This document shows positions 1 to 32,400 of a stretch of 64,000 nt of DNA, piece after piece. How positions within the stretch are numbered: the stretch's first letter is position 1; every line of letters begins with the position of its first letter. The translations under genes and the position numbers were made by a program. The DNA is from Bugula neritina (lineage: Eukaryota; Animalia; Bryozoa): the NCBI GenBank assembly GCA_964035545.1, contig OZ037765.1:28581504-28645503 (forward strand), written 5' to 3'. Under the pieces are notes generated by a model, which saw only the letters and a list, made by a program, of their open reading frames with translations, was not told the DNA's origin and searched no databases.

Positions 1-955
1 TAAGGCCAGCAGTTTATATAACAGGATTTTTGGAGCCACTGTGGCCACTGTTGATAGAGCTGCTATACATGTTCACCAAGGGATGGTGGAACTAAAAAAA
101 GCAAACTTTTTAGAAGCTGAAGACTTCGCTTTGACTGCTATTGAAATTTTGGGAAAATGTGGGCAGAAATTAGGACACAATCTTTTTTCTTGTCATCAGT
201 TGCTTGCAGAATTATATCTGGCTACTGGAAATTTTGAAAAATCAGCAGAGCAGCTAGCTGTGTGCAAAGATCTGATCCTTCAATCCAGTAACAGTGGCTA
301 CGTTCTCACACATTCAGCCATTCACTTAGTTGATGCAGAACTCATTTATCAAGAAGCACTCAATGCCAAGAACGATATCAGAGCAAACCAGCTTTCACTT
401 GCAAAACAGTTGGTAGAAGAAGTAATTGAGTCTTTGAAGAAAACTGTTCATTTTACAGTTTCCGATAGTCATCCAGATATGGCAGCAGCTTTCAGGTTAC
501 TGGGACAAATTTCTCTGGCATTGGGTAAAAACTCTCTTGCAAAATGGTATACTAAGAAAGCACTTAAGGGTTTTTTGACAGCTTATGGTGAAGGCACCAA
601 TCACATTGACATTTTGAAAACATTTCTTGTTCTCAGTGAAATAAGTTTGCAGAAAAATCAGCTTCCCAATGCTCAAGATTATGTTAGAAAAGCACTTCCG
701 GAGTTACAAGAATTTTTTGGTTATGTCAGTAAACATCCACTACTAGCAGAAGCTTGGCACATTCAGTCTCAAATAGAACTAAAGGCCGGTGATAACCGCA
801 ATGCATTAGAGCACAGTGCTATGTCGATATACATGATGGAACAAACATTTGGCTGGAACTCCAAACACCCAGCTCTTTTAAAAATAGCCACACATTTTCT
901 TACGGTTTTTCTCATAATATACTTTAAAATAAATAGTATAGCGCAGATACTGTAA
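1..955 (+). CDS. C-terminal TPR region of a nucleotidyltransferase-TPR protein paralogue (5' part outside the window)
   Basis: Frame open from the window edge to TAA at 953-955; aligns by eye with the last ~315 aa of the protein at 13226-16751(-), e.g. shared HPDMAAAFRLLGQISLALG and HPLLAEAWHIQSQIELKA; nucleotides are a diverged reverse complement of ~13226-14180. Confidence 0.9.
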   Translation, partial: KASSLYNRIFGATVATVDRAAIHVHQGMVELKKANFLEAEDFALTAIEILGKCGQKLGHNLFSCHQLLAELYLATGNFEKSAEQLAVCKDLILQSSNSGYVLTHSAIHLVDAELIYQEALNAKNDIRANQLSLAKQLVEEVIESLKKTVHFTVSDSHPDMAAAFRLLGQISLALGKNSLAKWYTKKALKGFLTAYGEGTNHIDILKTFLVLSEISLQKNQLPNAQDYVRKALPELQEFFGYVSKHPLLAEAWHIQSQIELKAGDNRNALEHSAMSIYMMEQTFGWNSKHPALLKIATHFLTVFLIIYFKINSIAQIL

Positions 956-4639: not shown

Positions 4640-4655
4640 CTTGCGTATAGCAGTC

Positions 4656-5606
4656 ATGGCAGAAGACGGCACGGAGCTACCCATTCCACTGAATGAAGGT
4701 GAGAGAGATAATGTTGATATACCTGTGGAACCAGTGGTGTTAGATGAAGAAGTGAGAATTCTTAGAGAGTATGGTGAAGACAGATACCGGATGAAGGTGC
4801 CCACCTTCGCAGGCGAGGAAGCAGTGGAGCAGTTTATCCAAATATTCCAAGATGTGATGGAGATTTCAGAGTGGCCGCCAAGGGTGGCGCTGCTCAAGCT
4901 CAGGATGGCGCTGACGGGCAAAGCTAAGCCGTACGGAGCGGGACCTGACATAGACGGAATCTTTGCTTCCCTGCGGGCCCGTTTTGGCATCTCTCCCATA
5001 GATGCGCGGGCCCGTCTACAGAGGATGCGGCGTGATCCTCACACGTCACTAGAAGAGCACGCTGCCACGGTGTACCCATTAGCGCAGATTGCATTCCGCG
5101 ATCTGCCTCCGGTACACCGTGAGAGGTATACCTATGATGCCTTCGTGCAGTCCATCAACGACTTGGGGCTCCACCATCAACTCCAAGCGAGGGGAGTCAC
5201 CACAGTCGAAGATGCACTTGCGGTGGGAGAAGCCTATCTCTTGGCGACTCATATGCACCGCAACCGCGTGGCCTCCCGCCAGGTGACCACGGAGCACTCT
5301 ACTGCTCACACCGAATTAAATGCGGAACCCTCCGCGGTGGCTAGTGTGAACCAGATGTCACTAGCGTCAAAAATCTCACAGATGACTGACATGCTAGATA
5401 AACTGGTCACCACATTAGCCTCCCCAAGCCAGGTAGATACTGCCCGTGAGCCTTGCGGGCCGCAGGTACAATCACCAGGCATGGGGCACCACTTCTGCTG
5501 GGAATGCGGAAGGCCAGGACATTTCCAGAGAAACTGCCCTCAACTCTCACCAGGGTTAAACTACCCCGGCCCGCAGATGTTCCCACCTCCTGCGGGCCGT
5601 CTGTAA
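4656..5606 (+). CDS. gag: Gag (capsid plus CCHC nucleocapsid)
   Basis: First ATG after the PBS (MAEDGTEL); capsid-like KVPTFAGEEAVEQFIQIF...W; zinc knuckle CWECGRPGHFQRNC. Confidence 0.93.
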   Translation: MAEDGTELPIPLNEGERDNVDIPVEPVVLDEEVRILREYGEDRYRMKVPTFAGEEAVEQFIQIFQDVMEISEWPPRVALLKLRMALTGKAKPYGAGPDIDGIFASLRARFGISPIDARARLQRMRRDPHTSLEEHAATVYPLAQIAFRDLPPVHRERYTYDAFVQSINDLGLHHQLQARGVTTVEDALAVGEAYLLATHMHRNRVASRQVTTEHSTAHTELNAEPSAVASVNQMSLASKISQMTDMLDKLVTTLASPSQVDTAREPCGPQVQSPGMGHHFCWECGRPGHFQRNCPQLSPGLNYPGPQMFPPPAGRL

Positions 5607-7813
5607 ATCACCCAGGGAGGCCCGCGCGTCTGTCGCCCCGCTGGGCGCCGCGCGGAGATGCTGTGAAGTGGCGACCCCCGCGGCAAGTAGGCTCAAGCCA
5701 CTCGCCGCCTGGGTCCTCTACGCCACTCCGGCACCAACACGGAGCCGGCAGACGGTTGACCACAGAGCCTGCGAGGGAAACGGTACAAGCGCCGCAAGGC
5801 GTACCGCCCCAACCTCGGCAGCTGGTCAATAGTCGCCGCCAACCGTGGACCCCTCGACCCACAGCGAGGGAGGTGCAACCACGGCACACTCAATTGCAGC
5901 CGCACGGAAGTAGCTACTTCCTGCCAGGGAAGTTAGCCGGCAAGCCTGCCAACTTCCTCCTGGACTCCGGCTGCACCACCAACCTCCTTAGCCGTCAGTT
6001 CTTTGACACCCTCAGCGCTAAGGTCAAGGACAGGTTGGCACCGTACGAGGGGGATCATGGCACCTTGGCAGACGGGTCGTGCATTCCCTTCTACGGCATT
6101 ATTGAGCTAACTGGTTACGTCCGTGACCAGGCCATCCAAGAGACGTTTATCGTCGGGCAGCTCAACGAGGATGCTATCCTCGGGATGCCATTCTTACAAC
6201 GACACGGTTGTCGCATCGATTTCAGTAAATCTGCGATAATCATGGGCGACAAGGAGCTCGCTTGTGTCGATAAGTTTGGTCGTCCTCTAGCGGGAGCAGT
6301 GCAGGTAGTACGGAGCTGTACTATACCAGGCCACTCCCGGGCTACCGTCCGCTGCAAGGTAGACGGTGGCCAAACCTCTAAGTTGGGAGTTGTCGAAAGT
6401 ACGCACTCGAGAGTCCAACTTGCCCGTAGTTTTAGCCGGCTCACGGGGCAAGGAGAGATCTCAGTGCAGTGTGTCAACCCCTTCTCAGAGACAGTAGACC
6501 TATCACCCAGATCCATGCTGGGTCGCTTCCATCCTGTCCAGGAGGAAGCCATTGGGCCGTCGTCGGGAGCTACGACGGAAGGTCCTCAGCAGAGCCCGTC
6601 TCGAGGGCGGAGGACCGTCCCAACCCACGCCTCCCCTCCTCCAGGGACGCGTGGCTGCACAGGCAACGGGAAGCGCCAGGCTATGGCTAGGTTGCCACAT
6701 GGGTACAGTGAGGCGTTCAGCCACACAAACCACGGAGCCCGCCTAAATAGAGCAGGCTGCCGTGAGGTACCACGGGCGGCGAGGACCGCCCCTGCTCAGC
6801 CACTTCAACAGAGGGCTGACACGCCCCCGGAGGCTGCCCAGAGCCTCCGCGCCAAACCTGTATGGGCTGGTAACGTTAGGGAGCTGCCGAAGCTCCAGGA
6901 ATGCCTTCCTGGGGTGGTAGCCGACGTGTACCGAGCGAAACAGGAGGGGCGACGACCCAGTAGTACACAACGGCGACAGGGATGCGCCGAGTTACGGCTG
7001 TACTGTCAACGTTGGAGCTCTCTGCGGGTCGGGCCAGATGGTCTGCTAACCATGACCTTGGCCACCAACAGCAGACAGCCAGCCAGGAAGAGGGTTGTCT
7101 GCCCAGTTGCCATCCGCCGGAAGTTGATACAAGACACTCACGAGGAGACTCACGGAGGAGTCCAAGGGGTGGTCACCAAGTTACAACTCCGGTGGTACTG
7201 GCCTAACATGGAACGGGATATCCGACGCAGAGTGAGACGGTGCAAAGTCTGCCAGACCAACAAGCATAGCCGTCTCCCTGGTGAAGCGGGGCGGCAGACG
7301 CATTGTGCGAGAAGGTCTCGGCAGGCGGAGACTGTCAACCTGGCCGGAAACACCTCCATGACACGTCAGGAAGACTTGGCGAGGCGAGAAAGGCCACTTC
7401 CGTCCTTGAAAGTGCGCCCACCGCCCCCAACGTCAAGCCTGCCATCATCACCACTTCCGGAACCAGAAACAGGTCCGGAAGTGCAAAAACCCCCCGTGGG
7501 AGGGGCTCCGCAAGGAGATGCCAACATAGGACCAGCACCACACACTAGGCAACTTCCAGCGTGTCTCAGAGACTGTGTACGTGACCGCGGTATAAGCGGC
7601 AGTAACAAAAGTCTAGAGAGGCCTCGCATGGGAAAACAGGCAAAGAGCCGTGGGAGTTGTGATCACCACGAGAATCTCAACTTTTGCCTCGGCGGAATCT
7701 CACACGAGATTCATCCGCTGGAAGTGAAAAGCCCTAGTCACGTTTCACAACCACGCTGTCCGGTCTTTTCCTATGTTGATGCAGTCGAGAGTAGACGTGC
7801 CAGTAAACAGTAA
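5555..7813 (+). CDS. pol: Internally deleted Pol: aspartic protease plus integrase HHCC zinc finger, no RT, RNase H or DDE core; probably -1 frameshifted from gag
   Basis: FLLDSGCTTNLL and ILGMPFL protease motifs; THEETHGG...WYWPNMERDI...CKVCQ integrase Zn domain; no YxDD, RNase H or D,D(35)E motif in the 786-codon frame; frame is -1 relative to gag with GTTAAAC in the overlap. Confidence 0.88.
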   Translation, partial: VKLPRPADVPTSCGPSVNHPGRPARLSPRWAPRGDAVKWRPPRQVGSSHSPPGSSTPLRHQHGAGRRLTTEPARETVQAPQGVPPQPRQLVNSRRQPWTPRPTAREVQPRHTQLQPHGSSYFLPGKLAGKPANFLLDSGCTTNLLSRQFFDTLSAKVKDRLAPYEGDHGTLADGSCIPFYGIIELTGYVRDQAIQETFIVGQLNEDAILGMPFLQRHGCRIDFSKSAIIMGDKELACVDKFGRPLAGAVQVVRSCTIPGHSRATVRCKVDGGQTSKLGVVESTHSRVQLARSFSRLTGQGEISVQCVNPFSETVDLSPRSMLGRFHPVQEEAIGPSSGATTEGPQQSPSRGRRTVPTHASPPPGTRGCTGNGKRQAMARLPHGYSEAFSHTNHGARLNRAGCREVPRAARTAPAQPLQQRADTPPEAAQSLRAKPVWAGNVRELPKLQECLPGVVADVYRAKQEGRRPSSTQRRQGCAELRLYCQRWSSLRVGPDGLLTMTLATNSRQPARKRVVCPVAIRRKLIQDTHEETHGGVQGVVTKLQLRWYWPNMERDIRRRVRRCKVCQTNKHSRLPGEAGRQTHCARRSRQAETVNLAGNTSMTRQEDLARRERPLPSLKVRPPPPTSSLPSSPLPEPETGPEVQKPPVGGAPQGDANIGPAPHTRQLPACLRDCVRDRGISGSNKSLERPRMGKQAKSRGSCDHHENLNFCLGGISHEIHPLEVKSPSHVSQPRCPVFSYVDAVESRRASKQ

Positions 7814-7836
7814 TCAGATACCACTTTCATTCCAAA

Positions 7837-8884
7837 ATGTCTTACTATTCTGGATCGAAGGGTGAGTTAATTATGTTTTTGGTACGATAACTAGACTGCA
7901 TCAGTCAGCTACACTAGCTAGCTGGAGATTCGATAATGATAAACAGTGGTGGGAATACACGTCGACTTTGATTTTAAATAATCTGTCATAGCGAGTGTGT
8001 TCTCCATCAACTATTCATTAGCCTGAATCTCACGAGTGTAACTGAACAGAGTACCGGTCAGGCTGTACACGCCGACGGTGTCTCAGTGTATAATCTTTAA
8101 CACTGCTACTCTTTCAGATCACACTCGAGTGACCACCTCCCGGTCACGAGACCAGCCAACCTCTCTGTCTATGGAAGAAGAGCCTGTAATGGAGAATGGC
8201 ATACCAGTAGTACTCCGCCGACGACACCGTTGGGTGTCACCCACGACAGAGAGGAGAATTGAAGAAGCCTGGGGACCCAGTGGACCACACCGAACCTGCC
8301 AGGTCTGCTTTGAGGAGTGCCCGTCACACCGCTCCTTGCGTTTACATGTGGATGCCCATTTCCTACTCCACTTCTGTCCCTGCGGCTTCCACGACGTCTA
8401 CCCGTATCCCGTGACAGTACATAAGCTAAGCTGCTTCGCCGGAGAGAACCACACTGTTGATGAAGACAGTTTCCCCCTATACCTGGATGCCATCAAACCA
8501 GTCATCAGGAAGGCTATTACCCTGGCCGCACTAACGTCAGGGTTTCACGTACTGATACTATCTGCCCGCCATAAGTCCCCTATGGTTCAGGGCCCACCTC
8601 CTACCCCCGTCAACCCTAGCAACACCCCAGAAGTAGAAGAAACAACCATATCCCGTATCACGGAGACCCCCGTAACCCCACCAAGACCTAGCCAGCTGGC
8701 TAACGTAGAAGAGCGGCTTCTAAGACTGCAAGCCGAGTTCACACAACTTGCCCCTGACTTGCTGGATACGACGACAGGTCTATACCAGTTGAAGGACTCA
8801 GTGGGACGACTGAAGAGGCGGCTACGGGCCCGACAGGCTCGACACAGAGCACGGTCGCTACAAGAAGCAGAGTCCAACCAATGA
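7837..8884 (+). CDS. Accessory ORF3 of the LTR element: C2H2-like zinc finger, Pro-rich linker, coiled coil and basic tail; predicted two exons 7837-7861 and 8118-8884 (263 aa)
   Basis: CQVC-x12-HVDAH then CPCG...H...C; heptad-like LRLQAEFTQL...LYQLKDSVGRLKRRLRAR. aaaATG at 7837, donor AAGG|GTGAGT at 7862, acceptor tttaac...ctctttcag at 8117; the splice is in frame (MSYYSGSK-D-HTRV). Unspliced alternative start at ATG 8171. Confidence 0.75.
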
Positions 8885-10197: not shown

Positions 10198-13012
10198 ATG
10201 AATTTTAATCCACCATCAAAGTGCCAAGAAGTTGAAGAGATCAGAGATGTGGTTACATGTGCCATATGTTTGGAACTGTTTGAGAATGCCCATTTATTAG
10301 CCTGTTCTCACAGTTTTTGCATGAGTTGCTTGAGAGAATTATGTTCAGAAATGGGCTCTATTAGGACTAGATGTCCCCAGTGCCGTGCAAATTCTGTCCC
10401 TCCTCTCTCATCACTTGATCAACTTCCAGAAAATGAGTTTGCAAACAAGCTAGCTGACTTGGTTAGAGAACAGGATGACAATCTTTCTTCTGGATGTATG
10501 TAGGAGTTTTAATAGCATTATTTTCACTTATTCTCATAGCAACTCAAATACTTCTATAATAATTAAAAACACATGCATATGTTATTTACATATGATAAAG
10601 TACATTAATACCGAAGTTGAGTGTTCACAAAGCTATGCACATACATTGCTGTGCAGTCTTTTGTACCTATATTGAAATAAAATTATTCTCTCTAACTGGA
10701 GCTGACTGCTATTAAAAGCTTTCTTGTAGGTATGCCAAGTTATAATCACTTTAGCATTCAACCAATTGTTAGATTCAGTGAGGTATTGTAATAATTTATG
10801 CAATTAATATTGTTTTAGGCCTCAGTTTCACTACCAGAGACTGAGTTTTAGTAAACATAATTTGATTTTCATTTAAGAAAACCAAAACTGAAGCGTGGGC
10901 TATGTTTTATATGTAACAGTTATTTGACCTCTGAGGCAAGTGAAAAAAGTAAGAAATAATGCAAAATCAGTGTAATTCAGTAATGAGTGCCCTACAGTTA
11001 TATTTGATGGATTGTTATATAAGGTGTTGTGGGTTATTGTAGTGGATACCGAAGAGTTGTATGTTGGAGAACTTTTAGAGCCGCAGAGCAAGCCCAAGAA
11101 ATTAACAGGAAAGAAAGTTGCACTTGCAATGCTTAAAGGTGCAGCAGCCGTGGCTTCATTGGGTCTTGGCGGAATATATTTTGGCGCTCAAGCAGTGAAG
11201 AGAAGAAGACGGCGTCAGGAAATGATGGCTCAAAACCCTCTGGAAAGTTTCATCTGCAGTAATTGTCAAAAAGCTCAAATATACTGCAAAAGTGAAGTCC
11301 GTTTTAAGTGTGGGTAAGTTTTTTTTAAAAGTGCGTTTTTAAGTGTCTAAATTGATATATCTCTGCAGGTGTTAAATATATTTTTAGCATAACATACTAC
11401 GCCCAATTATTATGCCAAAGTGACATGACTTGAGGACAACTTTTCTGTCAAAAAACTTGTTGCGAAACATGAGTATTTGAAATTGTATGTTGATTCACAT
11501 GATGTTCTGTTTTATTTTGACTAAATCCTGCTGTTTGGAACACTTTGATAGCACAATTTTTCATTGGTAAAAAGCTTTTTTTTAATGATAGTAGTGTAAG
11601 AGTAGATGTTCTACATAATTTATTGTTTTTTAGGTATCATGTTTCTAATTTTCAGTATATTTTTAAACGTACATAGCCATTTAATAGCATTAGAATGTAT
11701 TCTGATAGTAAAATTTTGAATAAGTATGACACCATACCAAAAAAAGAGAAGCTTTTGTTAAGGGTTTGGTATGTTTGAAGAGCTTCAATGTAGTTTGGCT
11801 GACTAAATTTTAAAGTTAAAGAACACTAGTTATTCAAAAGCAAATGCGAATCTCTGTGATCTTTTAAACGTTCTTAAAATCTATAAGTTGTCTGCCACTT
11901 CCCAAAAATATTGTTCTGTGTTTATCAAATGATGAGTTAAAGATCGTAATTAAAAAGTCACAAAACTAAAATGATGTGCTAACTAGGTAACTATTTGCAT
12001 TGCATTGCAATTGATTTCATTTTGTTGTGAGAGATGTTGAGTAAAAGTGGATTGTTTAGTAATTATTAGAGCAATTTGCTAGAGTTAGCTATTTAATTTA
12101 AATGCTTCTCTCTCATAAGTTACCTTTTATGGAATGACAATTCCTAATATTGTAGTATGTGCGAAGACTTTGACTTGTGTGAGAACTGTGCAACAACCAA
12201 TTCGTTTCAGCATTTGCATAGGGAAGACCATCTCATACTGAAACTGAAGTTTAAGCAGAGACGACAACTCCCACCAGGATGCCTACTCAAGTATAAAAAG
12301 GTACATCCTGTAGGTTTTAATTCATGGATGTAGAGTAGGCAACTCCTTAAATTTTAAAGTATGTGATGCAGTAATGTAAAATTATAATTCTTACTGGCAG
12401 GAATTAATTTAAAAAAATTTCATCCTTTTCTGTTTCTCCAAGTTTTACACATGCCTTGCAGTCAGTTGGAGTATAGAGGAACATTTATGGCTCTACAAAG
12501 TTTATTTGATTTTATTATATTTATTTATGTTTTACTACTAGGGAAAATTAGGAATTTGTTAGATGCCAGTCTGCTTTCTATTTAAGGCACGTGACATGGG
12601 CGAGGAGATAGACTATAGTTCTGTAGTCCATAGCAGAGCTTATTACCACACTTCAGATCAAATAGAATGGAGGGAAGCAATAAGTTGTTCATTTTGTGGG
12701 CAGTCTCCCATTGTTGGTAGAAGATACAAATGTGGGTGAGTGGCAATCTAAGTGCTTATAAGTTTATCCCTTTGCTGTGATTTTATTTATATTGACCTTC
12801 TGATTTAATAAATGATTGTAGTACCAACTGTAATACTCTACTATATTCTATAAATTTTTATTTTTAGCATGTGCCAGGACTATGACTTGTGTGAAGCATG
12901 TGAGAAACACTCACACGAAATACATGACAAGACACACGTTTTTATAGTATTGAATCACAGGGTGAAAGTGAACATTATTTCAGAGCCATTGATGAAAGCT
13001 GCACTTTATTAG
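10198..13012 (+). CDS. RING-HC finger protein with a hydrophobic/polybasic segment and two ZZ zinc fingers (putative E3 ligase, ~335 aa)
   Basis: Exons 10198-10495, 11043-11313, 12156-12300, 12587-12735, 12868-13012 join in frame through GT-AG introns. RING CAICLE...CSHSFCMSC...CPQCR; ZZ1 CSNC...RFKCG|MCEDFDLCENC...HREDH; ZZ2 CSFC...RYKCG|MCQDYDLCEAC...HDKTH. Confidence 0.88.
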
Positions 13013-13225
13013 CTTTCTGTAAATATCTAGTCAGAAGCAGTAAGGATAATGATATTAATTTCTGTTTGGTCATATTATTTTTTTATTGCATGAACAGCAC
13101 TATTGTGCTACATTACGATAGTTTTAATATATTTATTTATATATATATTTAGTGTAGTAAAAATTCAATCTTAAAAATGTGTCAAACTCATCAATATTTA
13201 TGGCAAAGTATTGTCACTACATTTT

Positions 13226-16200
13226 TTACAGTGTCTGTGATATGTTATTTACTTTAAAATATATTATAAGGAAAACCGTAAGAAAATGTGTGGCTGTTTT
13301 CAAAAGAGCTGGGTGTTTGGAGTCCCAGCCAAATGTTTGTTCCATCATATATATCGACATAGCACTGTGCTCTAATGCATTGCGATTATCACTGGCCTTT
13401 AGTTCTATTTGAGACTGAATATGCCATGCTTCTGCTAGTAGTGGATGTTTACTAACATAACCAAAAAATTCTTGTAACCCCGACAGTGCATTTCCAACAT
13501 GATACTGAGCATTGGGCAGCTGATTTTGCAGCAAACTTATTTCACTGAGAACAAGAAATGTCCTCAAAGTGTCAATGTGCTTAGTGCCTTCACCATAAGC
13601 TGTCAAGAAACCTCTCAAGGCTTTCTCAGCGTGCTGTCTTGCAACAGCAATTTCACCCAATGCCAGAGAGATTTGTCCCAGTAACCTGAAAGCTGCTGCC
13701 ATATCTGGATGACTATCGAGAACTTTAAAATGAACAGTTTTCTTTAAAGATTCAATTACTTCTTCTACCAACTGTTTTGAGTTCACAAGCTGGCTTGCTC
13801 TAATATCGTTCTTGGCATGGAGTGCTTCTTGATAAATGAGTTCTGCATCAACTAAATGAATGACTGAATGTGTGAGAACATAGCCACTGTTACTGGATTG
13901 AAGGATCAGATCTTTGCACACAGCTAGCTGCTCTGCTGATTTTTCAAAATTTCCAGTAGCCAGATATATTTCTGCAAGCAACTGATGGCAAGAAAGAAGA
14001 TTATGCACAGATTTCTGCCCACATTTTTCCAAAATGTCAATAGCAGTGAAAGCGTAACTTCTAGCTTCAGAATAGTTTGCCTGTTTTAGTTCCACCACCC
14101 CTTGGTGAACATGTATAGCAGCTCTATCAACAGTGGCCACAGTCGCTCCAAAAGTCCTGTTATATAAACTGCTGGCCTTAGCAAGATGATTCTTAGCTTC
14201 ATCATACTTGGCTAACTGTAAATAATATAACCCAATACTTATTTCAAAGTCTACAATAACCAGGCTGTCCTCTTTATCATCAAACAACAGCTGTTTTATC
14301 AGGGAGTAAGACATTGTGAGATTGCCAAACGATTTTAATGTTTTGTGATACCTTCCTTGATGGTAGCGCACAGAATCTGCTATAAATCTGATTTGTGCAC
14401 AGACTGCTCGACAAAAGTCAATTTCCTGAGGCGTTAAAAACTTATGTTTTTGTGAAACAATATAATTAATTTTTAAAAATAGTTCTTCTCTGCTTGTGAC
14501 ATCAAATGCTTCTTTCATCAAGTCAGCAGCGTCATCGAAAATTCTTTTGGATACTTCATATTTGCCCAAAGTCACTAGGCATTGTCCCTTAACTGCATAC
14601 AAATAGGCTCTTTTTACAAATTTGTCTTTGGAAGATTTATCCATTTGGTCAATCAGCCAGTCAAAATAATGCACTGCTTTAGCAAATTTTCCAATTTTAA
14701 ATAGTAGGTGTGCTACAATGTAAACCATGTCTTCTGAGCTGTCTTGAAACCTATGCACAAGACAAGTTGGATTATCTGGCACTTGAGCACCAAGAATACT
14801 TTGAACATGTTTCAGACCACCTTCATAGTCACCACAAATGTAGTGAAGCCTGCAGCGCAAAACCCAATCTGCTTTGTCAATGGTTATCGATTTAAAAAGG
14901 TCACCCATGCTCCATTTAAGGTTGATTTCTTCAGTTCCATTTTCCACAAACTTCAAAATTGATTGTTTGATAGGAACTAAGCGAGTAGCCATAGCTATGT
15001 AAAGCTTTACTGGAACAAAAAATCGGTCATCCGTTTTCTCAATGATATGTTGAGGATGAAATGAGAGTTCTTCTTTTTGTGTACCATTCTGCAGGTATGC
15101 TGAGGTACGGATCCATATTGCAGACATGAGCACAAACTGCATTGCAGCTAAATTTTCTTTGCTTAACCATTTTTGATTTGAATGTAGCTGTTCAAATACT
15201 TCCCATGCAGTGTCACACTTATCCATATTTAATGCAATTCTAATATTATGGGCCATTATTGTGGGATATCGGAAAATATCTGCTTTCACTTTTAAATTTC
15301 TCATGTCTTCATTAATGTCTCCTGGACAATAATCAAAGCTCTTTATATCCAAAATCAGCCGTTTCATGCGCATTTCTTCCAGTTGATGTCGTTGTATTTC
15401 GAGCTCTTCAAAATTTGTTTCAAAATCATGCTTCTGAAATTTAAAATCTTCTAGCAGAGCAGACCCATCCTTTTCTCCATCATGTGAGTGAATCAGTACT
15501 GTACTAAACAGCAAATCTGACAACCCTGCAACTTCAGTAACATCAGTTTGATTAACTGAGCTGATATAACGATCCATTAGCTCATTTACTGTCAAGATAA
15601 GAGTGTTTTCAGAGAGGCCATTTCCTGTTGGAATATTTCCTGCTTTTGGCAGAAGTCCATCAATTTTAAATCCACTTGGACCTTTGTCTACAAACCAGAG
15701 CTTTTCTTTTGCTTCATCAGATGTTGATCTGTAATTGTCATACAGTTCTTCTATGTAGTAGTATTTGAGTGGAGTCTCACCAAGGTTTGATATTCTGAAA
15801 TATGTATCAACTGCTAGTCTCAGAAAGTATGATTTGTCACTGTTTGGCTCAATTAAGAAGGCATATTCAAGGTCAGAGTATGGTGTTGCTTCACTCCTTG
15901 CTATGGAGCCTAAAGCAATAACGGCATAGCGGCATGGTGCATTTCCAAGTAATTTCTCGCTCGTTTCACAGATGTCCTTTGCGAACTTAATCATTTCACT
16001 TGTGCAATGTTCACTTTGACATTTAACATTTTCAACAAAATTATTTGCATAAAGTTCATTCTGTTGACTGAACATGTCACCCATCTCCATCTGCTCAATC
16101 AATTTCCCACATTCCATGAATCGAACATGGCAGCTCCTTCTCATAGAGTTGAGTTTTGATTTACATCGCTCAGTGACTTTTCTTAGTTCATCTACATTTT

Positions 16201-16751
16201 TCAAAGGGTGGCTTCCATCATACCAGTCACACTCTAGGTTAAATATTTTTTCTCGTATTTCGGAAATTTCATGCTCTTGGCAACGCTGTAATGAGGAATT
16301 CCATAAGGCATGTGCCTACAAATTATATGAAAAGTGAACTATGCAGCTGTTTTTCTTATAAAAAAATTCCTAATTTATGGATTGAGATAATGTAGTTTGA
16401 GTTTGTTTAGCCATGCTACTTTTATGTTTCATTGCCCCATGAATCATAAAATCTAATCAATTCACTCCTTCCTTTTGAAACACCAGTTGTTTATCTTGAT
16501 AAAGATGCAAGTGACTAACATTAACTGGCATAAAGTATACTTAGTAGAATGTAATATACTTATAGAACACCTACCTTGAGATAGAGAATCCATCTGTTTG
16601 GAGTTTCTCTTTTTTGTTTCTTGGCCCTTAGGGTATATTCTTCAGCCAAACTGTATAGGTGTTTATATTGTTGATGAATATCTTCAGGTCCATATTTGTA
16701 GTAATCTGCTTTGAAATCCTCTATGAATTTGTCCCTTTCAAAGACAGCCAT
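13226..16751 (-). CDS. GlnD/GlnE/DUF294-like nucleotidyltransferase, helical substrate-binding domain and TPR array (~1088 aa, 2 coding exons)
   Basis: Exon 1 16575-16751 (MAVFERDK...WILYLK) splices in phase 0 to exon 2 13226-16315 (AHALWNSS...). Pol-beta-fold motif YAVIALGSIARSEATPYSDLEYAFLI; helical KADIFRYP...WIRTSAY; repeated TPR helical hairpins with HP-x-x-A motifs. Confidence 0.88.
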
Positions 16752-16859
16752 TTATTCTCTTGATTGGTATTAGTACACAGTAAGCTACTTGTTAGTACTT
16801 ACACTTACAGCGTCACCACGCATCTCCAGCCTACTCGACTCGATTGTGATAGGTAACTG

Positions 16860-16975
16860 GACTCCCATTGGCTCCCTTTGTTTTGTTGCCGTAACAAGGC
16901 ATTGTATGTTATTCAATGGACACTGATCCAACCCAATAGCGTTCATCCAATCAGATGGTTAGAGTCACGTGATAA
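16860..16975. promoter_or_regulatory. Candidate promoter of the NTase-TPR gene (possibly shared with the divergent JmjC gene)
   Basis: Locally CpG-richer stretch 110-220 bp upstream of the ATG with CCAAT/ATTGG boxes (~16867, ~16934, ~16947) and E-box GTCACGTGA (~16964). Confidence 0.45.
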
Positions 16976-17161
16976 AGTTGCACTTTAACCCAACTTGGTC
17001 TCTCTCCACGATAATTGGTTATACTACAACAACCTCGATATTATAATTAATTTCTTGTTAATCAATGTAAATAATTATATTAACTCACTATCGATGATTT
17101 AACATCTCCAATCTCAACATTATTTTTGATGCTATGTAACATGAAACTTTATAGTAGTAGC

Positions 17162-17199
17162 TACTGAAGTGAAACTATAACCTAGGTTATAGTTCAATG
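17162..17199. mobile_element. 38-bp hAT-like mini element with perfect 8-bp TSD
   Basis: GTAGTAGC|TACTGAAGTGAAACTATAACCTAGGTTATAGTTCAATG|GTAGTAGC; same family as 3904-3948. Confidence 0.65.
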
Positions 17200-19446
17200 G
17201 TAGTAGCCATGTATTATTTTGCTCAATAAAGTAAAGCTTATAGTGCTGCTCCATGGCCTAATATTTTGTTCTCTGTTACATAGATATAAAGTATTTAGAA
17301 TTTCACTAGCATGGGTATCTTTATCAGGATTAGTGTCCTAGAAAAGTCTTCTTCATTACCTCGGAAAGTTTGGAAAAATTCAGTTCATAGATACTCAACT
17401 GTGCTGGAATCCGACTAGTATAAGACCAGGATAGCTTGCGTGTCAATATAATATACTTTGAAGTGTGCTGTATTTATTATTGTATTGTAAATGACACGGT
17501 GTCTTTGGGAACACATACTACTATATCAATTACTCATCAGTGGTTTAGAAGTCTGTATATTTGCAGAAAGACATTTTGTCTATTAATCAGTTGGCTGCCA
17601 TTTTAACGGCTAAACTGTATCTGCAAGTGTTTCATTGTTGGTGGTGTTTCATATTGTTTTTCCAGCATCCTGAGTGTTTATATAATATGGTGACAAATTG
17701 AATATTAAAATTAATGCATGGCATATTTGCAACTTAACACTGTTCTTAGTGCATTGGAACTGAAATAAGTTGTATATGTAAGTATAATTCGTTCCCTATA
17801 GCAGTAGGGGTAGGAAATTTTTCTGTGCACAAATATTGTTTATTTCAACATATGTCATATATAGCAAATACTACAACAATTACTGTATGTTTCTTTTAAT
17901 ATTAAATTGATAATATTTATGGAAATAATAATATTGTGTGGTTATATTACTTATATAATAGCTGAAATGTCTATTCCGATTATTGCTACTTTGAATTTGT
18001 TTGAATTCACTGCTAACTTGTGAATGTATTCTTGCAAGACTCAATAGTTCAACTGCTCAATAAGAAAAATTTGAACTCTTGCCAACAAACTAGATGCCAA
18101 CACAATTATATTATACAGATCCTGATATGATTCACTTATAAAATATTGTGTTTATTTATCACTGTTAAAGCAACAGTGTTCATTTATATTTATAGTTTCA
18201 GGTACTAGTGTAATTTCATTGTAGGTTCTACCTATAACTACTATAGCCAGTCACAACCCCTAAGTTTAGACAATTATACATGTATTGTGTTTTATTAATT
18301 GTCTATGCGATGCACAAATGCCCACACATATATAATAAACTATTTTAAAGGCTGCTTACTGGTGGACTGATTTAAAATATTGAGACCTGTAAGACTAGAA
18401 GTCAACTAATTTGATGTCAAAATATTATTCTTATCCTACAGGAATATTATATTAATATATTATTATATTAAAGAAATTGTTAAATAATTTTGATCATGAT
18501 TTAGTTTTACTCATGACATATGCTTGCAAAAATTTTACTTGCTTGATGTACACCAGAGCCTCGATCTAACCTTTTAAGTTATTGAAAATAGGCATATGTA
18601 AAAATCATATAAATACTAAGCCATAATATTTCAAAATTCTTCTGCAAACTAATCTTTAAATTTGTTTTGTAAGATTTTTCTTCTCTTGATCAGACTTGGA
18701 AACTTTTAGCCCAAATCCACATTATGGCAATGATGAATGGTCATATAAAAGGCCTGAGCGTGCTCAAAAGGGGAGGAGCCAATGACTATAAGTATGCTTT
18801 GAGATTTTGTTACTTTGACATTTTGGCTGTACATCTCATGCTGTAACTATTGTATATAAAAGCATTTCTCTCTATTGAAGCTATTTTCTTCTGGAACTGT
18901 ATTACATCAATATAGTTTGATTAGTGAGTTAAATCTACAATACTCTTTATAGTACTGTATTTATAGTTGATTTTTCAATTTACCTATGATATAAATAATT
19001 AAAATATAAACACCATAGAAGGGTCCTACTTTATAACTAGGGCGCCGTACTCATCAGCTAATCTATTGAAAATTACTTTCCTGGTGCTGCCCTAGAACTC
19101 TAGAACAGCTGATGCTGCATAAAATTAAATCAGATACCACTAAGTATTCTTGCTAATGATTTTTATTTAGTCATTTTTATGTTTATACAAAGCTTTTTTT
19201 AAAAAAAATAATATGAAGCTATGGATTTGCTCACTAAGGATCTGTTTTTACTATTAGCTACTGAAAGTATCAGTCGAGAGAAGTGAACATTGCAATATCA
19301 TTAATTACAGAAATACAATACACAAAAAACTCAGTTGTCAATGTATAAAAAGTAACAGTATTTTAAAATGCATTTATTCCTCATTTGTTTAGTCAACTGT
19401 GTTTTGGGAAATACATTGTAGGTTGTCGTAGCACAGCACGCCTAGT

Positions 19447-29477: not shown

Positions 29478-32400
29478 TTACATATCTTCAGTGCTCCATT
29501 TATAAGCCTCAGCAGCCACAGCTTTTCGCTTTGATATAGACTGGAAATACTTTTTCTCGAACCCATTACCTCTGTCCACACCATCCCACCTATAACCTGG
29601 CCGAATCCCAAAACGATTGGGCTCAGGTGCAGGACCTCTATATTGAGGATATTCTAAAACAAAAACATGCATTATATTCTCACCTAGCAACAAATAAACA
29701 ACAAAATAAGTGAACAGGACAAACCTAAATAAATTTGTATGTTTGATAATAGCACTACTAAATGTCATGCAAAATAAGATCTCTTGAAAATAATATCAAC
29801 AAAAAACTAGTATTTCTACTAGCTGTGGTATGGAAAAACTTGAACACCAAAAAGGCTAAAAGAAACAAGCTGTAATGTAACCAGTTGAAACATAGAATTT
29901 TTTAGTTACAACTTTTAGTTATACGGAAAAGTCAGCACACAGTAAATTATTATATGGCAAATAATGGCAAATACAAACTTGGGGCTTTGGACTTGGCACT
30001 TTTCTTTTTCTTGAGAAATGCCAACATTGGATCACCATCACGATCTTGATCTTTGAGAAAGCTGTCTAGGTCAGCATCATCCTTTGTTCTAGCCAGAGGC
30101 TTGTTCATTTCATGTGCCATCTCAGTTATATGCTCTTTTTCAGCTGCTCCTTGCGCAACTCTACACATTAAAATTAGTAGTTTAGAGCTGACAAAATAAA
30201 ACTTTACTGATAAGAGTACAACTCAAGTAATATTTAAGTGCTTCACTATCCAAAGTCAATGAGTAAGTCAAAGGTCCGTGTAACCACCCTCCTAGGTATT
30301 ATCAGAGTTTTATACTGATGTGTGGTATTTTATTGGTTTAATCATCATCACCACAATCATCACTGTAAAACTGCGAAGTAATTAAAAAAGATGAATAAAA
30401 ATGCACATGTATAACCTAAATATAATTCTAATAAAGAGTAAGTAGTTTAACAAACAACAAACAAATTAACATTAATAAATTTAACAACATTATATATACA
30501 GCATACTTTTGTCACCTTTCTAGGAGAGATAGGTGCAGTAATGGAGAAATTGAAAAAAGCCTGTGTTCTAGAGTAGAAATGTAGCAAAATAAGTAATGTT
30601 CCCGCAAAAATTTCAACCCGAGCCCTAACCCAAAATCTGTAAGCAAATTTAAAGAACTTGGGCCATCTCAATTTCTCCAAACTTACAACTATAATTCCAA
30701 TCTCCAGTAAATAACAATAAGAAGTTCATTGAATACTTAGCAAATTTTCAACTAGTTATCTTTTACAATATAGATTCTGCTTTACTTGACGCTATATTAT
30801 CGAGGAAGCACATCTCACAATAATAATGGTTTACCCTTTATTCCATTTATCGTATTTTTCTTTCCACTCATTACTCTTAGCATCATCCTGCTCCTTTTCG
30901 GATGCCAAATTTCTTTTCTTTCCAGTCTTATCCCTAAAAACTGTATGGGCATTTTTTCCCAATACTTCATCATCTATCTAAAGTATTACAAAGAAAAACA
31001 ACTTTTATAAACAATTCATACAATGATGTCTAAAATGTGTCTGTTTCGTTAAGGTAATTTTGCTAGATATAGAATTTGACATCAGCAATGGCTTAATTTA
31101 CCTTATTCAAATAAGTAATAGAATTGTAATTATTAGTAATTGATAACATTTATGAACTACTAAATTGTTATCAAAGAATACAAAAATAGTATACAGTTAC
31201 AACATTCATCCTTTTCCTGTAATTAGTAATACCTTATTAAACATTTGTACTTCTTTCAATTTTAATTTCTCCGCCTCTTTTTTCATATCCTGAGCTGATG
31301 AGAGCCCAGCAATCTTTCCTGAAAGTGTTTTATTGGTTGTTATGGAATTATTAGACTCAGTGTTACTAATATTTTGTTTTCGTGGAGGTGAGCTGTCTGA
31401 GTCATTCCTCTTCCTTCTGGGTGGTGAGCTGTCTGAGTCATTCCTCTTCCTTCTGGGAGGTGAGCTGTCTGAGTCATTCCTCTTCCTTCTGGGTGGTGAG
31501 CTGTCTGAATCATTCCTTTTTCTTCTGGGAGGTGAGCTGTCTGAGTCATTCCTTTTTCTTCTGGGAGGTGAGATGTCTGAGTCATTCCTCTTCCTTCTGG
31601 GTGGTGAGTTGTCTGAGTCATTCCTTTTTCTTCTGGGAGGTGAGATGTCTGAGTCATTCCTTTTTCTTCTGGGGGGTGAGCTGTCTGAGTCATTCCTCTT
31701 CCTTCTGGGTGGTGAGATGTCTGAATCATTCCTTTTTCTTCTGGGAGGTGAGCTGTCTGAGTCATTCCTTTTTCTTCTGGGAGGTGAGATGTCTGAGTCA
31801 TTCCTCTTCCTTCTGGGTGGTGAGTTGTCTGAGTCATTCCTTTTTCTTCTGGGAGGTGAGATGTCTGAGTCATTCCTTTTTCTTCTGGGAGGTGAGATGT
31901 CTGAGTCATTCCTCTTCCTTCTGGGAGGTGAGATGTCTGATCCAATTCTTTCCTTTCCTGAAGGCAAACTGTTGCTGTCAACTTCCTGATTTATGGTAGA
32001 CGAATAACTATCTGTGTTATTCACTACAAACAAAAGAAATTGTTAGAAAGATATAATACATTAATAAAAAGTATGAAAATGTTTATTTTGATCTTGAAAA
32101 AAATATAAAATATCAGTAAAAGTGAAATATTTATTGGCATAATTAGGTGCACAATGATGTCTGGCATTTAATTGCCATAAATTTAGATATTTGTTTCAAT
32201 AAAATATTTATTGTTTCTATAAAAACAGTACTTAGTGCAGTACAAACTGCTTACTTTTAGTCAATTTTTTCCATTTCATATTTTCGCGGTACTCTTCCAG
32301 TTGACGCACAGCTTCAGGTCTTTCATCAATAATTTCCGCCACAGTTGGATTATCATCTTCAAGTTCACAGTCCGCAGGTAAAAGCTTTGCTAAGTCTAGA

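Follow-up and report, generated by a model that had tools for sequence, protein, structure and literature searches.

The window analysed here is a stretch of 64,000 nucleotides from the bryozoan Bugula neritina (contig OZ037765.1; G000:C1:28581504-28645503 of a 216-Mb assembly). It carries, on its minus strand, a two-exon gene in which a nucleotidyltransferase (NTase) and a helical domain are followed by a long array of tetratricopeptide repeats (TPRs). The gene is real, transcribed and spliced, and its enzyme domain is, by motif, Pfam score and fold, a Pol-beta-like NTase of the GlnE/DrrA/DUF294 clade. As to function, we lean, albeit modestly, towards a cytosolic, selectively maintained protein that would combine an active DrrA/GlnE-type NTase, a HEPN-like domain binding nucleotide or substrate, and a TPR superhelix of about 13 repeats. 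This would be a TPR-directed enzyme of the AMPylase type, for which we infer the activity, the nucleotide, the target and the role of the TPRs.

The catalytic motif of the enzyme domain is intact. The earlier note, made from the letters of the window, had pointed to an hG-S...D-x-E motif, to a later acid in FKIDG and to a helical domain around KADIFRY, and all three turned up in the translation where it had put them (Table 1; residues are numbered from the start of exon 2). In an alignment (A1) of the first 520 residues with 31 relatives, drawn from bryozoans, taxon-unlabelled contigs and one Rickettsiaceae metagenome-assembled genome (MAG), the columns of G136, S137, P145, S147, D148, E150, N177, E180, G215, D219, P229, K344, R349, R403 and Y407 were invariant. 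GS-x11-D-x-E was also retained in 20 of 20 paralogs read, in the amphioxus and Owenia domains and in nearly all bacterial domains scanned, the exception being domain d2 of the Jidaibacter protein P0255, which gave no clean regular-expression match. Invariance of the metal-binding acids, of the GS motif and of K344, R349, R403 and Y407 would be unexpected once catalysis had been lost. A pseudoenzyme or scaffold, whose NTase fold served for binding only and which acted as a TPR adaptor, is thus very unlikely, the more so given that the motif is kept in lancelet, annelid and bacterial domains.

Pfam DUF294 (PF03445) matched residues 110-170 with 28.8 bits, against a gathering cut-off of 21; 30 of 32 family members matched this model, while 12 matched SidM_N and one DUF294_C. 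When the A1 profile was compared with the sequences of the PDB, the sole match below E 0.01 was DrrA (E 0.0015), in an alignment that covers both the GS...SDL[DE] stretch and the VK.DIFR helix. The active site of DrrA consists of G98-x11-D110-x-D112 plus D150 and D249 (PMC8097203). G136, D148 and E150 correspond to G98, D110 and D112, and E180 and D219, both invariant in the family alignment, are candidate equivalents of D150 and D249.

The AlphaFold2 model of the enzyme half had a mean predicted local distance difference test score (pLDDT) of 86.2 and a predicted template modelling score (pTM) of 0.89 (both structure models cover exon 2 only). A Foldseek search of the PDB returned just four significant matches, namely DrrA (6yx5_B, E 3e-5) and GlnE (1v4a, and chains A and B of 3k7d; E 5e-5 and 7e-5), with probability 1.0 for DrrA and for both GlnE domains; the next matches lay above E 0.4. 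VIA, which is independent of Foldseek, gave the same neighbours: DrrA at Z 25.7 (318 of 339 residues aligned, root-mean-square deviation 3.9), GlnE at Z 19.8 (1v4a, N-terminal) and 19.3 (3k7d), then the DrrA structures 3nku (Z 12.0) and 3l0i (Z 9.3), the rest being below 8. In the VIA alignment to 6yx5_B, which spans model residues 1-465, the N-terminal hairpin takes the place of the helices at the N-terminus of DrrA's AMPylation domain. As for the helical domain, VIA aligned it with residues 209-345 of 3l0i (Z 9.3) and with HEPN proteins (Z about 7-7.7, over model residues 310-470). A survey of HEPN domains had assigned the C-domains of GlnE and DrrA to the KNTase_C/HEPN clan (PMC3710099), and Pfam DUF294_C was found in bacterial relatives of our protein. 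Profile, Pfam score and both structural comparisons therefore bear out the bacterial-type GlnE/DrrA/DUF294 assignment of the earlier note. With catalytic residues invariant across 32 aligned relatives and a DrrA match at Z 25.7, these features lie well outside what chance would produce.

DrrA and GlnE are both protein tyrosine AMPylases with the motif G-x11-[DE]-x-[DE] (PMC8097203). The closest known structure is that of Legionella pneumophila DrrA/SidM (6yx5, 3nku, 3l0i; SidM_N PF20879), in which N-terminal helices, NTase core and helical C-domain all align, although sequence identity is only about 15-17%. DrrA, a secreted type IV effector, continues into a guanine nucleotide exchange factor (GEF) domain for Rab1 and the phosphatidylinositol 4-phosphate-binding P4M domain, whereas the window protein continues into TPRs and is encoded by an intron-bearing host gene. 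Pfam found neither a Rab GEF nor a P4M domain in its C-terminal half, meaning that it is not DrrA proper. The adenylyl-transferring and -removing domains of Escherichia coli GlnE (3k7d, 1v4a), whose target is a protein tyrosine, share the NTase plus helical domain fold and the motif class, but GlnE gave no sequence-level match and differs in its two tandem NTase modules, its PII regulation and its lack of TPRs. The NTase cores of GlnD and of canonical DUF294 proteins (cNMP-binding, CBS, DUF294 and DUF294_C) are detected by the same Pfam DUF294 model; the window protein belongs to neither group, having neither the HD and ACT domains of the former nor the CBS and cNMP-binding domains of the latter.

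Behind the enzyme, residues 484-1028 form a TPR solenoid according to Pfam, the full model and Foldseek alike, in keeping with the array of about 500 residues that the earlier note had described. In the AlphaFold model of the whole of exon 2 (pLDDT 82, pTM 0.78) the enzyme half runs straight into the TPRs. TPR_12 scored 64 bits, TPR_16, TPR_8 and TPR_2 were above their cut-offs, and TPR_10 matched as well. Foldseek aligned the C-terminal half with TPR solenoids at E 1e-8 to 1e-5, the best matches being the degron receptor APPBP2, the TPR domain of O-GlcNAc transferase (OGT), LGN, subunits of APC/C, IFIT5 and domain III of MalT, so that the modelled half resembles substrate- or peptide-binding solenoids. 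Pfam and NCBIfam scans detected no NACHT, NB-ARC, Death, TIR, CBS, cNMP-binding, HD or ACT domain in the window gene, and a STAND-type NTPase between effector and TPRs was absent from it and from the four paralogs scanned.

The body of the protein lies in a single 3.1-kb exon, which the earlier note had put at about 1030 codons and which holds 1029; no other open reading frame (ORF) in the window exceeds 800 aa. The remaining ORFs of at least 200 aa belong to the tail of a twin copy and to a GC-rich element at 4641-8884, apart from a few short ones. Exon 1, which was compared separately and in whose sequence no signal peptide was evident, is 43% identical to residues 3-54 of protein P0003 of Watersipora subatra (E 2e-8), and exon 2 homology begins at P0003 residue 55, exactly where the exon 1 match stops.

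Table 1. Features of the NTase-TPR gene and of its twin copy (window positions unless a genome position is given)
Feature	Position	Strand	Basis or remark
Two-exon NTase-TPR gene	16751-13226	minus	1088 codons in all
Exon 1	16575..16751	minus	ATG at 16751, 59 codons, phase 0, end AAG/GTAGGT (slash, exon end); read from sequence
Intron, 259 nt, GT..AG	16316..16574	minus	transcript contigs and acceptor position in paralogs
Exon 2, whole enzyme-TPR body	13226..16315	minus	after TTTGTAG; 1029 codons 16315-13229, stop 13228-13226
N-terminal long helical hairpin, exon 2 aa 1-123	15947..16315	minus	model helices 2-31, 41-71, 84-123
Pol-beta-type nucleotidyltransferase core, aa 124-300	15416..15946	minus	Pfam DUF294; model strands 130-135 and 149-155
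Catalytic motif G136-S137-x10-D148-x-E150, GSIARSEATPYSDLE	15866..15910	minus	translation
Invariant E180	15776-15778	minus	translation, alignment
D219 of FKIDG, invariant later acid	15659..15661	minus	FKIDGL at 15670-15653, translation
HEPN-like/KNTase_C-type helical domain, aa 306-476	14888..15400	minus	VIA; VKADIFRY at 15289-15266
TPR solenoid, aa 484-1028, about 26 paired helices (about 13 TPR pairs)	13232..14866	minus	Pfam TPR models, full model
3' end of inverted twin, last 317 codons and stop	2..955	plus	tblastn, 84% amino-acid identity
Rest of twin, upstream of window	G000:C1:28579369-28581503	plus	read from genome (L021)
Duplicated unit common to gene and twin	12559..16887	minus	gene with a 5' flank of about 135 bp and a 3' flank of about 670 bp

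Splicing was assessed with contigs from four public sequencing runs (four studies, same-organism label), which we compared with positions 12700-17300. Contigs of X1, X2 and X4, from three of the studies, omit exactly 259 bases, from 16314/16315 to 16574/16575, and the ends of the skipped stretch read CT..AC on the plus strand, i.e., GT..AG on the strand of the gene. Identity between contigs and window is 95-97%, and only 7 of the 39 listed differences agree with the twin copy; moreover, the search of the genome with the enzyme half found no third locus above 39% identity to gene and twin, so that a retrocopy does not account for the exon joint. An origin of the joined contigs in the twin or in a retrocopy was rejected on these grounds, and we take them as spliced RNA of the window gene from another allele or strain. 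In a contig of X4 (depth 43.6), positions 12734 and 12867 are also joined, with plus-strand GT..AG ends (window 12734-12990), a sign that a plus-strand RNA is spliced immediately 3' of the NTase-TPR gene, between the twin genes.

With regard to mechanism, D148 and E150, together with the invariant E180 and D219, would make up a two-metal active site, from which a nucleoside monophosphate, most likely AMP from ATP, would be moved to a protein side chain that bears a hydroxyl group. The target protein would be held or selected by the TPR array, which might instead bind a ligand that licenses catalysis. Since the closest structural relatives add or remove a nucleotide on protein tyrosine, and since the active-site residues are invariant, a protein nucleotidyltransferase is the most likely kind of enzyme, AMP being the default guess. 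The role of the TPRs may be likened to that of the superhelix with which OGT, also a protein-modifying enzyme, selects and presents its substrates. The analogy stops at architecture; OGT has the opposite domain order, an unrelated catalytic fold and chemistry, and a single-copy housekeeping gene.

Other substrates are conceivable, and the earlier note had named a nucleotide-messenger synthase as one option. The Pol-beta NTase superfamily also includes enzymes that make a nucleotide signal or oligonucleotide, or that act on a small molecule or an RNA end (kanamycin/aminoglycoside NTases, Hailong HalB, CD-NTases), and VIA did give weak matches to ANT(4'), AAD(9) and HalB at Z 6-7.5. Yet we consider a non-protein substrate unlikely: the three strong structural neighbours (DrrA and two GlnE domains, Z 19-26) all modify proteins, DncV, CdnE and tRNA CCA-adding enzymes appeared only at Foldseek E >0.9, and no receptor-type partner domain was seen. 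There was no match to the cGAS/CD-NTase fold past the minimal Pol-beta core (Foldseek E 1.3-2.2 for DncV and 2.3 for CdnE, TM-scores at most 0.17) and none to Pfam Mab-21 in the window protein, which agrees with the claim of the earlier note that this NTase clade is distinct from cGAS-like receptors and OAS. With those Mab21-type animal proteins, often expanded in invertebrates, our gene has in common only the concept of a nucleotidyltransferase with a recognition function; they belong to another NTase clade and make nucleotide messengers rather than modify proteins. The metazoan AMPylases FICD/HYPE and SelO may have a like chemistry, but their folds (Fic and pseudokinase) are unrelated.

Several observations weigh against the assignment as a TPR-directed AMPylase. 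The window protein reached neither Pfam SidM_N (E 0.01) nor DUF294_C, and it scored 14.9 bits against a cut-off of 799 in the NCBIfam GlnD equivalog NF001265; this score and the absence of GlnD domains make the UniRef label of the Bugula fragments, 'Protein-PII uridylyltransferase N-terminal domain-containing', a misleading name. The loop after D219 (residues 190-240), with its invariant GNIPTGNG, was modelled at low confidence. In the subfamily of the window gene the TPR match is weak, at 64 bits in TPR_12 versus 250-760 in expanded paralogs, and the RNA evidence consists of contigs only, which are 3-5% diverged from the window.

Finally, the fold does not decide between transfer and removal, since the deadenylylating domain of GlnE matches as well as the adenylylating one. 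In GlnE, one active-site motif serves both adenylylation and deadenylylation. Conceivably, then, the protein could be a nucleotidyl remover or a bifunctional enzyme that, like the N-terminal domain of GlnE, erases AMPylation by another enzyme, possibly a bacterial effector. The near-equal Z scores of 1v4a and 3k7d speak for this, but DrrA, a forward AMPylase, is by far the best match, and the sequence holds nothing that tells the reaction direction; we regard this reading as very unlikely.

The window gene is one of a large family in its genome. The enzyme half matched the genome at no fewer than 64 places; 53 of these lie in uninterrupted frames of at least 860 codons, and most of the matches belong to same-strand tandem arrays on C5, C6, C2 and C7. 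This answers the copy-number check proposed in the earlier note. We read 20 paralog loci in sequence and judged 40 others from the genome match table. In 19 of these 20 paralogs the long frame opens right after a TAG acceptor, at a homologous [AS]-H-[AG]-[IL] codon, an intron position that is common to paralogs only about 34% identical, implying that the 5' intron predates the expansion of the family. The paralogs scanned consist solely of NTase, helical domain and TPRs, with TPR_12 scores of 250-760 bits and the longest frames exceeding 1900 codons, and the number of TPRs ranges from about 8 to more than 40. A few copies are damaged, i.e., L024 (a shortened N-terminal frame), L032 (an internal TAG) and three loci whose frames are split or hold stops (G000:C5:15101497-15102495, 15116096-15117468 and 16121154-16122529), and they represent a minority of decaying copies within the arrays. 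No other gene of the genome belongs to the subfamily formed by the window gene and its twin, the next paralog being 39% identical. The subfamily is co-linear with Watersipora P0003 and with several taxon-unlabelled proteins, and it looks like an old, stable branch rather than a fast-expanding array. A database fragment from B. neritina (P0109) showed 96% identity.

A second copy at the edge of the window, which the earlier note had mentioned, is the tail of this twin (plus strand, 2-955, 84% identity). The twins are convergent and about 12 kb apart. By blastn, the duplicated unit is 90% identical over 3.9 kb and 88% over 0.37 kb. The whole twin has an exon 1 that is 98% identical, an intron of 257 nt and 1029 codons that align with the window gene with no gaps. 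Nei-Gojobori estimates of synonymous divergence (dS) and of the nonsynonymous-to-synonymous ratio (dN/dS) differed along the pair: dS was 0.045 in codons 1-520 (the enzyme half; dN/dS 0.38), 0.30 in codons 521-1029 (the TPR half; dN/dS 0.40) and 0.49 in codons 521-720, inside the TPR half (dN/dS 0.35). Both copies are under purifying selection. Positive selection as the cause of the faster TPR divergence was rejected, because dN/dS is about 0.4 in both halves whereas dS differs ten-fold. The step in dS points instead to a mosaic history of the pair, probably through gene conversion of the 5' half, or else through an exchange of TPR segments. Between the twins lies the GC-rich stretch already mentioned, whose GC fraction is 0.51-0.56; ORFs of 321, 786 and 268 aa occupy its plus strand.

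Word-index searches, whose length window hides much longer proteins, named just Watersipora, Bugula and one Rickettsiaceae MAG, but an exhaustive profile search of 1.84 billion representatives returned 2326 proteins at 1e-3, 1708 at 1e-10 and 846 at 1e-30, and we looked up the names of 20 of them. A bryozoan-only distribution was thereby rejected, as the names included Branchiostoma, Owenia, Jidaibacter and Rickettsiaceae. Among lancelets, Branchiostoma belcheri, B. floridae x belcheri and B. lanceolatum carry relatives; each of the amphioxus proteins P0214, P0215, P0216 and P0242, one of which is annotated TTC28, holds two or three NTase-TPR units, probably through the merging of tandem genes in the models. 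In the annelid Owenia fusiformis, P0250 joins an OTU protease to two NTase domains and TPRs. In Watersipora, Branchiostoma and Owenia the orthologs and paralogs are part of chromosome-scale contigs, and the taxon-unlabelled relatives lie on contigs with sparse short ORFs, as is typical of eukaryotic DNA. A Pol-beta NTase fold is thus predicted, the family is multi-copy and patchy in its occurrence, and the window gene is transcribed and spliced, so that none of the outcomes that would have refuted the earlier note (no such fold, a conserved single-copy pan-metazoan housekeeping gene, or no expression) holds.

The nearest non-animal relatives belong to intracellular bacteria: Jidaibacter (WP_161791869, KIE04896), Rickettsiaceae MAGs, Rhabdochlamydiaceae and Parachlamydia-like bacteria. 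The Rickettsiales versions are like the window gene in that the NTase is already joined to TPR_12 arrays; unlike it, the bacterial proteins are often giant, may have two NTase domains and may bear an F-box name. In the amoeba endosymbiont Ca. Jidaibacter acanthamoeba, P0251 and P0255 are 3000-3700 aa long with two NTase domains each among TPRs, and one Jidaibacter protein is named F-box-containing by UniRef, which suggests host-directed effectors. The name look-ups added a further Rickettsiaceae MAG. For the Rickettsiaceae contig of P0055, a ParE fragment at its end supports a bacterial origin. A scan of bacterial genomes found relatives with SidM_N, DUF294 and DUF294_C in Rhabdochlamydiaceae and other Chlamydiae, and a profile of bacterial sequences picked up Parachlamydia-like and Bacteriovorax entries. 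The best bacterial sequence from an assembled genome, besides P0055, itself a query row, was L041:295-3012 of a Rhabdochlamydiaceae MAG (G001 C5; E 2.6e-48 against the animal-dominated profile), a protein of 906 aa with a SAM-methyltransferase-like N-terminus, the family NTase and a short TPR-like tail. The N-termini of other bacterial variants (L013, L014) are signal-peptide-like.

A role in innate immunity or another genetic conflict is a rival reading. In it, the TPRs would sense a ligand that is of microbial origin or signals danger, and the NTase, activated in this way, would AMPylate a host trafficking or translation protein or a pathogen protein. Such a sensor-effector role would add to the proposed AMPylase-type chemistry and does not conflict with it. 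Consistent with it are the lineage-specific expansion in same-strand tandem arrays, the variable number of TPRs, the mosaic twins, the OTU protease fusion in Owenia, the kinship with DrrA-type effectors and with giant F-box/TPR proteins of intracellular bacteria, and the expansion in amphioxus, an animal noted for its large innate immune gene repertoires (PMC8195603). However, no copy scanned has a STAND NTPase, a Death, a TIR or another signalling domain; dN/dS shows no excess in the TPRs; PADLOC gave one marginal match only; and the window subfamily, being small and co-linear across species, fits a conserved partner over a diversifying receptor. We hold the immune role to be tentative and less likely than not.

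The earlier note had also suggested horizontal acquisition, and had proposed a tree. Both of our trees lack an outgroup (there are no DrrA, GlnE or GlnD rows) and are in effect unrooted. In both, a long, fully supported branch sets the bacterial relatives off from the bryozoan clade. In the tree of 100 rows, all bryozoan and taxon-unlabelled sequences form one clade (99 in the Shimodaira-Hasegawa-like approximate likelihood ratio test, SH-aLRT) with 16 bacterial rows opposite; the nearest of these rows (L041 and P0055) are both long-branched. In the tree of 69 rows, to which the amphioxus, Owenia and Jidaibacter domains had been added, the bryozoan clade was supported at 100/100, and amphioxus (100/96) grouped with Owenia (94/80) amid Rickettsiales and taxon-unlabelled long proteins, over a weak backbone (48-72). 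Although this free tree splits the bryozoans from amphioxus and Owenia, non-monophyly of the animal sequences was not supported: in the approximately unbiased (AU) test, an all-animal clade versus the named bacteria was not rejected (delta lnL 4.3, p 0.37).

A patchy occurrence in animals, combined with a concentration in obligate intracellular bacteria, makes gene exchange the natural explanation. Judging from these sequences, an exchange between animals and intracellular bacteria of the Rickettsiales or Chlamydiae, in either direction and in one or more events, is plausible; whichever event gave rise to the bryozoan genes is an old one. The one-big-exon layout, which the earlier note had contrasted with the many short exons of the host neighbours, is no sign of a recent arrival, given the phase-0 intron in 19 of 20 paralogs and the presence of the family in Watersipora, Branchiostoma and Owenia.

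For a single 3.1-kb exon with a bacterial-type domain, in a host known for bacterial symbionts, one had to consider that the DNA might be a bacterial contaminant or have been inserted from a symbiont only very recently. This can be excluded: the gene sits inside a 35.6-Mb contig, its spliceosomal intron is removed in transcripts and sits at a position common to distant paralogs, its relatives lie on chromosome-scale contigs of other animals, and its GC content is 0.38, against 0.34 for the window.

Elsewhere in the window, four overlapping ORFs of 205-275 aa occupy both strands of one 0.8-kb stop-poor stretch at 31206-32033, which is probably repetitive or compositionally odd.

Reviews credit animals with two AMPylases, FICD and SelO, and list GS-ATase and DrrA as bacterial only (PMC8097203), while a survey of 2015 had found DrrA-like proteins only in Legionella (PMC4454073); our searches of the literature turned up no publication on DUF294 or DrrA-type enzymes in animals. 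A broader and rather doubtful proposal is that the family constitutes a further, DrrA/GlnE-type class of animal AMPylases, having common ancestry with effectors of Rickettsiales or Chlamydiae, which in bryozoans, lancelets and some annelids would have expanded as TPR-guided sensor-enzymes that nucleotidylate host or microbial proteins in infection, symbiosis or colony allorecognition. If true, this would be a third enzyme class for nucleotidylation in animals, beside FICD and SelO, present in dozens of copies per genome in bryozoans and also in amphioxus and an annelid, each enzyme being predicted to come with a TPR module of its own for targeting. Closely akin as it is to proteins from obligate intracellular bacteria, the family offers a concrete case for gene exchange between endosymbionts and animals, and it may show how an effector-type enzyme was turned to host use.

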